DNA of 43,454 nucleotides from Octopus sinensis. Lineage: Eukaryota. The stretch spans positions 1 to 43,454 of the forward strand of contig NW_021835090.1 of NCBI RefSeq assembly GCF_006345805.1. Direction: 5' to 3'. Positions 31,786 through 32,344 of the stretch are shown piece after piece. Made by a program: the position numbers and the translations under genes. The notes beneath the pieces are model-generated. The model saw only the letters and a program-made list of their open reading frames with translations. It was not told the origin of the DNA and searched no databases. The first letter of the stretch is position 1, and every line of letters starts with the position of its first letter.

Positions 31786-31920
31786 TGTAGGTCCCGGGTT
31801 GATTCGGGTTACCACAGTAAATAAGGTACTCAATACATAGCAGAGTAAAATTAATTTATTATATAGAAGGAGCTTCTACAGGACTAGAACTGTTTCATTC
31901 AAGAGAAATCTTCAGGAAGC
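31782..31920 (-). mobile_element. Hammerhead-bearing PLE-type terminal repeat (long arm) running into (TA)n
   Basis: Begins with the HHR at 31920 and ends ...cccgggacctaca(ta)n; the first 65 bp are repeated in inverted orientation at 32280-32344. Confidence 0.7.
31872..31920 (-). ncRNA. Type I hammerhead ribozyme fold
   Basis: Identical reverse-complement copy of 32280-32328. Confidence 0.8.
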
Positions 31921-32281
31921 TTAAGCATTGTTATGATATTTGGCTCCAATGTTCCTGATAATACACAAATGATCAATATCGATTCTAAGTATCAGTAGAT
32001 TAGTGATCACCAGAAGCTAAGAACGGCGTCTTTCTGTTCAACATATCAGCCAGAAATAGCAGGGCAATTTTCCATCAAATGATTGTATATACTCTCTTAT
32101 AATAAATAAATGCGACCTTTTAAAAAAACCTAGCGAGGCTCATGGGCAGGTTTACCCGTTTCAATGGCGTATGTGTTCCCCAGCTGGACAGGACGCCAGT
32201 CCATCCCAGCGTTACTCATTTTTCCCAGCTGAGTGGACTGGAGCAACGTGAAATGAGGTGTTTTGATCAAGAACACAACGC
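31919..32281 (+). repeat. 363-bp direct copy of 30056-30418
   Basis: Colinear with the source; about 4 substitutions and 6 homopolymer indels; shared GC at both junctions. Confidence 0.95.
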
Positions 32282-32328
32282 TTCCTGAAGATTTCTCTTG
32301 AATGAAACAGTTCTAGTCCTGTAGAAGC
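32280..32328 (+). ncRNA. Type I hammerhead ribozyme fold
   Basis: GCUUC-CUGAAGA-UUUCucuuGAAU-GAAA-CAG-uucuaguc-CUG-UA^GAAGC: 5-bp stem I, 4-bp stem III, canonical core, predicted cleavage after 32323; stem II is weak (U.U then UUC/GAA). Confidence 0.8.
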
Positions 32329-32344
32329 TCCTTCTATATAATAA

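Follow-up and report, generated by a model that had tools for sequence, protein, structure and literature searches.

In the Octopus sinensis genome we analysed a stretch of 43,454 nt (positions 1 to 43,454 of contig NW_021835090.1, hereafter the window), which holds an insertion of approximately 570 bp inside a (TA)n microsatellite. This insertion (the cassette) has two identical, outward-facing ends, or arms, around a piece of copied DNA, and each arm carries a hammerhead-type ribozyme motif; the arms are probably the ends of a Penelope-like retroelement (PLE), for which the case is circumstantial but coherent. The left arm (31856–31920, minus strand) and the right arm (32280–32344, plus strand) are 65 nt long and perfectly complementary, with 0 differences in 65 positions, and the inverted repeat extends to 75 nt when three mismatches are included (31846–31920 and 32280–32354, 96%). 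These two are the only copies of the arm in the window, where none would be expected by chance, and the 49-nt core of the arm has no further match there even at three mismatches. The inner end of each arm coincides with the first base of a 5-bp helix I (GCUUC/GAAGC). On the right, the arm directly adjoins an imperfect (TA)143 tract (32335–32615, called by Tandem Repeats Finder, TRF), and on the left 74 bp of unique DNA (31782–31855, minus strand, with no second copy within the window) lie between the arm and a microsatellite of (TATC)n followed by (TA)18 (31639–31781, from TRF and the sequence itself). This 74-bp extension may be a one-sided 3′ tail or target DNA. In element sense it ends in an AC-rich stem-loop (GGUAACCCGAAUCAACCCGGGACC), and its far end is ~90 nt from the predicted cleavage site. 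Only when the extension is counted as part of the insert does (TA)n stand on both sides, and flanking direct repeats of at least 4 nt, themselves (TA)n, are present only if the insert begins at 31782–31787; at the arm ends themselves there is no flanking direct repeat or target-site duplication of at least 4 nt.

Between the arms lies a filler of 359 bp (31921–32279, plus strand) copied from 30058–30416, with a GC on either side that is common to the arms. Taken with these shared dinucleotides, 31919–32281 is a direct copy of 30056–30418 (96.7% identity over 367 aligned columns), and the donor is situated 1,863 bp upstream on the same strand. Filler and donor differ by four substitutions and six small indel events, the latter mostly in homopolymer runs, and all of these fall in the first ~240 bp. 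The resulting divergence (10 events in 363 bp, about 3%) and the lack of any difference between the arms both fit one event of fairly recent date. At each junction the overlap of arm and copied segment is limited to the GC, with an additional imperfect GCGTC/GCTTC at the right one; microhomology at both junctions and a nearby template in cis are both present, as in templated insertions. The donor consists of ~200 bp (30056 to ~30254) that have no other copy in the window besides the one in the cassette, plus the 3′ part of a minus-oriented short interspersed element (SINE). Alignments to other SINE copies place the intact element of the donor locus at 30255–30526 (minus strand), with the filler breakpoint at 30418 inside it, and the copies at 547–713, 14809–15121 and 16002–16203 align continuously across 30418/30419, where the cassette copy ends. 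The direction of copying is from the upstream locus to the cassette, because the SINE of the former runs uninterrupted past 30418 and that of the latter stops. Most of this anatomy had been proposed in an initial annotation of the window, and its identical 65-bp inverted arms, their start at the first base of stem I, the 363-bp direct copy of 30056–30418 as filler, the source in unique DNA plus the 3′ part of a SINE cut within that SINE, and the sharing of GC alone at both junctions were all borne out; of the (TA)n flanking that it described, the part on the right stands, whereas the left arm is separated from the tract by the 74 bp of unique sequence.

A hammerhead-type motif in both arms

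Read 5′ to 3′ from its inner end, each arm has the sequence GCUUC-CUGAAGA-U-UUC-UCUU-GAA-U-GAA-ACAG-UUCUAGUC-CUGU-A-GAAGC, which includes all parts of the hammerhead catalytic core, correctly ordered and spaced (C3–A9, G12–A14 and A15.1–U16.1, with A as H17) as well as a helix I of 5 bp and a helix III of 4 bp. The motif runs from 31920 to 31872 in the left arm, with a predicted cut between 31877 and 31876, and from 32280 to 32328 in the right arm, with a predicted cut after 32323. A relaxed descriptor (minimum lengths of 4 bp for helix I and 3 bp for each of helices II and III, one mismatch allowed at 10.1/11.1) matched the window twice, at the two arms, and gave no match in 300 dinucleotide-preserving shuffles (~26 Mb scanned). 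Since the descriptor hits the arms alone and the shuffles not at all, the motif is not a chance resemblance. Cores of the form CUGANGA-N7-17-GAAA are likewise found in the window in the two arms only. Other relaxed-descriptor matches, at 25923–26022 and 32954–33029, were judged spurious, with either a 3-bp helix I or a helix III that has no loop.

The minimal hammerheads of PLEs are distinguished by a short helix I (4–5 bp), an extra nucleotide between A9 and 10.1, and a palindromic 15.2–16.2/loop 3 segment (PMC4209133), and the arm motif has all three. Its helix I is 5 bp long, the CUGAAGA that ends in A9 is followed by a U (compare the Sitophilus PLE motif CUGAAGAU), although a matching extra U also stands before G12, and the GAAAC...GU frame is present, in which AC...GU encloses loop 3 (UUCUAGUC) with a palindromic CUAG centre. 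The fourth trait, a helix II of 6–8 bp with G10.1–C11.1, is replaced here by three pairs. At the level of the motif, then, the arm is of hammerhead type, possibly degenerate.

Resemblance to Penelope-like elements

PLEs prefer AT-rich DNA and (TA)n as insertion targets, and their insertions typically have an inverted 5′-truncated copy at the upstream end and a tail of 30–40 bp at one end only (PMC8557442). Purified PLE protein cleaves and extends both target strands, favours AT-rich DNA, and starts reverse transcription at two internal sites located 82–89 nt downstream of the hammerhead cut in the lizard element PAc, for whose initiation site an AC-rich stem-loop has been described (PMC11167929). 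The cassette agrees with this picture in its target, (TATC)n(TA)n on the left and (TA)143 on the right, and in its inverted truncated neighbour copy with outward-facing 3′ ends. The distance of ~90 nt between the end of the extension and the predicted cut also resembles the 82–89 nt of the lizard PLE and the 85 nt of a weevil PLE (below). Minimal hammerheads in Schistosoma mansoni form opposite-strand pairs 100–700 bp apart (PMC4209133), and PLE families have recently been active in Octopus vulgaris (PMC13282606). The open reading frame (ORF) for reverse transcriptase (RT) and GIY-YIG endonuclease and the pseudo-long terminal repeats (pLTRs) that define a PLE are missing from the cassette, which could be at most an extremely truncated PLE insertion because only 65-nt ends are present.

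As a comparator we used a complete PLE insertion of the weevil Sitophilus oryzae (PPTJ02000576.1, 1178–4410), which carries the minimal hammerhead CCUCUGAAGAU-GCUAGC...GCUAGC-GAAACGUU|AGG in two outward-facing copies, at 1309 (−) and 4308 (+). Its other features are an inverted truncated copy of 544 nt (1219–1762 matches 3854–4398), an AT-rich target-site duplication of 12 bp (ATATTTTGTGTT), a 30-nt tail at the left end only, and a distal 3′ end 85 nt from the cut site. No more than 2 nt separate the start of its main copy from the point of hammerhead cleavage, and at the inversion junction there are 10 nt of duplicated filler (GTATACGGTA). The cassette shares with it the outward-facing hammerhead ends, the inverted copy, the AT-rich target and an extension at one end only. 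Known PLEs with inverted copies (Craig et al. 2021, PMC8557442, and the weevil insertion) differ in having unequal arms that enclose PLE sequence (pLTR, RT-EN ORF), whereas in the cassette host DNA lies between two arms of 65 nt, both of which stop at one and the same base upstream of the motif. At a Tenebrio locus that was tried as a control no core motif was found, and the stretch just upstream of its gene consists of Ns. Complex PLE insertions with an inverted 5′-truncated copy were reportedly already described by Evgen’ev and Arkhipova in 2005.

Searches with the arm pattern gave no match in metagenome contigs (two scans) or in viral contigs. Ten ORFs of the window, looked up as exact sequences in a protein collection, had no match there either. 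In a prokaryote genome collection, the degenerate arm pattern had one exact match, in a Bacteroidetes metagenome-assembled genome (CAIWCG010000188.1, 310–338), which was rejected as a chance match, being apparently coding and devoid of helices I and III. A search with the Poseidon_Ac protein returned 4,581 matches, and no cephalopod PLE was among the 120 listed, which derive from lizards, insects, a spider, a lamprey and other contigs.

Proposed formation and its alternatives

We tentatively read the cassette, with a probability of roughly 40%, as the scar of one double-ended retroelement insertion into (TA)n, most likely by a PLE or by a short non-autonomous RNA that a PLE mobilised. Because both arms are 3′-terminal copies that point outward, each is most simply seen as complementary DNA (cDNA) primed from one cut strand. 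In the sequence of events that we infer, the element’s endonuclease would cut both strands of the AT-rich target, and each 3′-OH would prime reverse transcription of the 3′ part of the element RNA, where the hammerhead lies, giving two outward-facing copies. The right copy would start about 21–31 nt downstream of the hammerhead and the left one probably ~90 nt downstream, which would leave the one-sided tail. Both cDNAs would end at the same template nucleotide (...GGAAGC-3′), and the simplest cause would be run-off from a template RNA beginning at GCUUCC, either a short non-autonomous transcript or one from a promoter just upstream of the motif. The inner ends of the arms were ruled out as products of hammerhead cleavage, as the predicted cut lies 44 nt inside the arm, unlike in the weevil PLE. 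A polymerase would then anneal the terminal, self-complementary GC to a GC 1.86 kb upstream on the same chromosome and copy 359 nt of DNA, and the bridge would be closed by re-annealing of GC to the other cDNA end, amounting to microhomology-mediated, synthesis-dependent repair. For the filler we favour host repair synthesis on DNA over the element’s own RT, because the template is nearby, in cis and in the same orientation, and 30056 and 30418 bear no marks of RNA ends.

Several observations weigh against this double-ended insertion, beginning with the motif itself. Helix II consists of UUC/GAA, that is, three A/U-rich pairs, and has U·U in place of G10.1–C11.1, where PLE minimal hammerheads normally have G10.1–C11.1 and 6–8 bp (PMC4209133); a strict descriptor that demands a helix II closed by G10.1–C11.1 had no match in the window. 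Rfam returned no hammerhead at E ≤ 10 for the whole window, an 801-bp region or a 65-nt query, a negative that carries no weight for this class because Rfam likewise misses both textbook minimal hammerheads of the genuine S. oryzae PLE at that threshold. The hammerhead fold (−5.7 kcal/mol) lies above the minimum free energy (MFE) of −6.9 kcal/mol and is not the MFE fold in context, and the arm motif folds no better than shuffles (z-score +0.3). Directly 3′ of the motif, UAGAAGCUCCUUCUA (32320–32338, mirrored at ~31862–31880) forms an 8-bp hairpin within the MFE fold, which sequesters the 3′ strand of helix I and so competes with that helix. Thus, of the hammerhead arms initially proposed, the complete core stands, beyond chance by descriptor and shuffles, while helix II is non-canonical and no Rfam family matches. 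In addition, the predicted cut is 44 nt downstream of the point where both arms stop, so that a further assumption on the 5′ end of the RNA is required; the two copies of known PLE insertions are truncated at different points and are equal here; and 359 bp of templated filler is long for end-joining repair. The element remains without coding sequence, as tblastn with the Poseidon_Ac protein (PMC11167929 supplement) found nothing in the window below E = 2 and no RT or GIY-YIG remnant, and no third copy of the arm was found beyond the two in the window. The one-sided extension is 74 bp, and its putative tail of about 65–70 nt compares with a typical 30–40 nt. The link to PLEs made in the initial annotation is kept for the (TA)n target, the inverted truncated copies, the possible one-sided tail and the topology, but the arm could be tied to no PLE family.

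The filler may instead have been made within the same double-ended insertion by the element’s own RT. On reaching the 5′ end of the element RNA, the enzyme would have switched to a minus-sense transcript (or single-stranded DNA) of the nearby 30056–30418 region, and a second jump would have taken it to the 3′ end of the opposite cDNA, with the terminal GC used at both. The polarity fits, since top-strand cDNA runs from the left arm into plus-sense filler, the order that would result if a minus-sense template were read starting at its 3′ end; run-off leaves a cDNA end naturally suited to such a jump, and the GC at both junctions is the cDNA terminus. End-to-end template jumps with 1–3 nt of microhomology are known from the RTs of R2, group II introns and their relatives. 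We nevertheless hold this rather unlikely, as no feature marks 30056 or 30418 as an RNA end: ARAGORN found no tRNA-like unit, the closest T-run on the minus strand lies 10 nt past 30056, and the SINE reaches ~30526, so 30418 is not its start. A breakpoint at a tRNA-like SINE head, as in an RNA processed by RNase Z, was ruled out on the same two grounds of SINE extent and ARAGORN result. Moreover, RT chimeras usually take up abundant RNAs, not intergenic DNA 1.9 kb away. In the capture mechanism initially put forward, the local copy and the 2-nt microhomology joins hold up, but a PLE RT as the copier is not supported, and a cis template 1.9 kb away suits DNA repair at least equally.

The remaining explanations concern the arms or the locus as a whole. 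The arms could be the terminal inverted repeats of a DNA transposon, or of a miniature inverted-repeat transposable element (MITE) or foldback element, with the interior replaced by local DNA in abortive gap repair and the motif incidental or inherited. DNA transposons do acquire filler by template switching during gap repair, and the inverted repeats of 65–75 nt (counted as perfect), the AT-rich site and a second, older inverted-repeat structure 450 bp downstream would all suit such an origin, as would the activity of MITEs and Tc1-mariner elements in Octopus vulgaris (PMC13282606). It is made improbable by the complete core with helices I and III, which is very unlikely to arise by chance (0 in 26 Mb of shuffled sequence), by arm ends that have neither a target-site duplication of at least 4 nt nor a familiar transposon end motif, and by a topology equal to that of a genuine PLE. 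To a formation in two steps we give the same low credence. There, a head-to-head perfect palindrome would have come first, with the GC overlapped (...GGAAGCTTCC..., itself palindromic), its centre then being broken through cruciform or hairpin cleavage and repaired with filler. Instability and frequent revision of the centre are known of long perfect palindromes, the filler occupies precisely the axis of symmetry and has GC on either side, and equal arms would be explained without a defined RNA 5′ end. This route requires one more event, however, and its initial palindrome still needs equal truncation or snap-back synthesis; there is also no sign of two ages, the ~3% filler divergence and the 0 of 65 arm differences fitting one. 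Finally, the cassette might be an assembly or chimeric-read artefact that is absent from the animal. Palindromes embedded in microsatellites are hard to assemble, PLE structures are known to disturb assemblies (PMC8557442), and 6 of the 10 differences between filler and donor are small, mostly homopolymer indels that look like long-read errors. We regard this as very improbable, given that the other four are substitutions, that the arms are exact, that an arm–filler–arm order differs from the simple fold-back (A-B-B′-A′) of missed adapters, and that both junctions are clean microhomology joins.

Folding and likely effect

The arms of an RNA transcribed from either strand pair at 64 of 65 positions, and the arm–arm duplex has a predicted energy of −114.7 kcal/mol versus −5.7 kcal/mol for the hammerhead fold. 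As the duplex far outweighs the hammerhead fold, a transcript across both arms would be expected to form a long 65-bp hairpin and not a ribozyme. Folded as DNA, the cassette lies 14 standard deviations below shuffles. For two single arms, the palindrome in loop 3 would allow a dimeric helix III, and the cofolded dimer (−23.8 kcal/mol) is ~10 kcal/mol more stable than two monomers (2 × −6.9 kcal/mol). We found no evidence of ribozyme function for the cassette. Of the two RNA products envisaged initially, self-cleavage in either direction of transcription is thus unlikely, considering these energies and the weak helix II, and the 65-bp hairpin is retained. The cassette itself is probably an ordinary neutral and non-functional insertion scar.

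Other repeats in the window

Repeats crowd the window, whose G+C content is 36%. They include numerous (TA)n, (CA)n, (GA)n and (TATC)n microsatellites as well as short interspersed repeats, of which three or more families (for example 1270–1620-like, 5137–5384-like and 24811–25285-like) have about 10–20 copies each. Neither a real ORF nor a tRNA or Rfam family was found in the window, where the ORFs of at least 90 amino acids are all low-complexity or repeat-derived. A separate inverted repeat, 450 bp downstream of the cassette, has arms of 194 nt (32811–33004 and 33268–33461) that are 86% complementary, enclose a spacer of 263 nt and have no further copy in the window. Its spacer and right arm overlap a copy of an abundant interspersed repeat of ~230 bp (33071–33291). 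It could represent an old MITE or foldback element, or else a second case of arm–filler–arm organisation.

Discussion

Inverted truncated PLE copies, (TA)n targeting and opposite-strand hammerhead pairs have all been published already. One of the closest known arrangements is that of the S. mansoni pairs (Cervera & de la Peña 2014, PMC4209133), in which, as in the cassette, a few hundred bp separate two PLE-type motifs of opposite strand and no full element is present; the nature of the intervening DNA is not stated there, whereas the spacer of the cassette was copied from a site 1.86 kb distant, with 2-nt microhomology at the joins. Priming of cDNA by both strands, which the cassette suggests, has parallels in the both-strand cleavage and extension by PLE protein in vitro (PMC11167929) and in the twin priming of L1. 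Twin priming differs in that it uses one RNA and yields an inversion with contiguous element sequence, whereas the copies in the cassette are identical, very short and separated by foreign filler. In L1, as Ostertag and Kazazian reportedly described in 2001, both target strands prime and the inverted copies are joined by microhomology.

For the filler, templated insertions at breaks are among the nearest relatives. Templated filler arises at double-strand breaks and at retroelement junctions through microhomology-mediated break-induced replication or fork stalling and template switching (MMBIR/FoSTeS) and through polymerase-theta end joining, and templated sequence insertions were reportedly described by Onozawa et al. 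in 2014. Like these, the cassette has an insert copied from elsewhere, 2-nt microhomology at each switch and a nearby template in cis, but its ends are retroelement cDNA and its 359 bp exceed typical polymerase-theta insertions. Template jumping by the R2 RT (reportedly shown by Bibillo and Eickbush) and the U6–L1 chimeras said to have been found by Buzdin et al. share with the cassette a possible switch from the 5′ end of one template with minimal homology, yet such chimeras take abundant RNAs from across the genome and the cassette took adjoining intergenic DNA and a SINE fragment. MITEs and internally replaced transposons also have perfect inverted termini around unrelated captured DNA; the cassette departs from them in its arm ends without target-site duplication, its complete hammerhead core in the arms and its PLE topology.

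As to novelty, opposite-strand hammerhead pairs are not new, but two equal minimal ends joined by a local copy were not found described for PLEs or cephalopods in the literature searched. That literature likewise contained no description of hammerheads in octopus, and the supplements of the key papers no cephalopod sequences. The locus hence adds an example at nucleotide level that is only mildly unusual, and a new capture mechanism is not established by it. Such a mechanism, in which a PLE RT primes on both strands, runs off a short hammerhead RNA and jumps to local host nucleic acid, thereby packaging host sequence between identical ends, seems to us decidedly improbable. If it were true, PLEs would have a route for transducing host DNA and for seeding non-autonomous elements or hairpin-RNA loci, and, provided that the ends suffice for recognition, transcripts from one strand or the other could serve to mobilise the cassette anew.

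PLE integration past first-strand synthesis is ‘yet to be validated’ (PMC11167929). If the double-ended insertion with host repair is the correct reading, the cassette would be a legible snapshot of how such a PLE insertion is resolved, in which the cDNA ends, the junctions and the bridging template can be read nucleotide by nucleotide. A genome-wide set of such pairs could then show whether the gap is closed by the element or by the host, and whether the RNA has a defined 5′ end upstream of the hammerhead.

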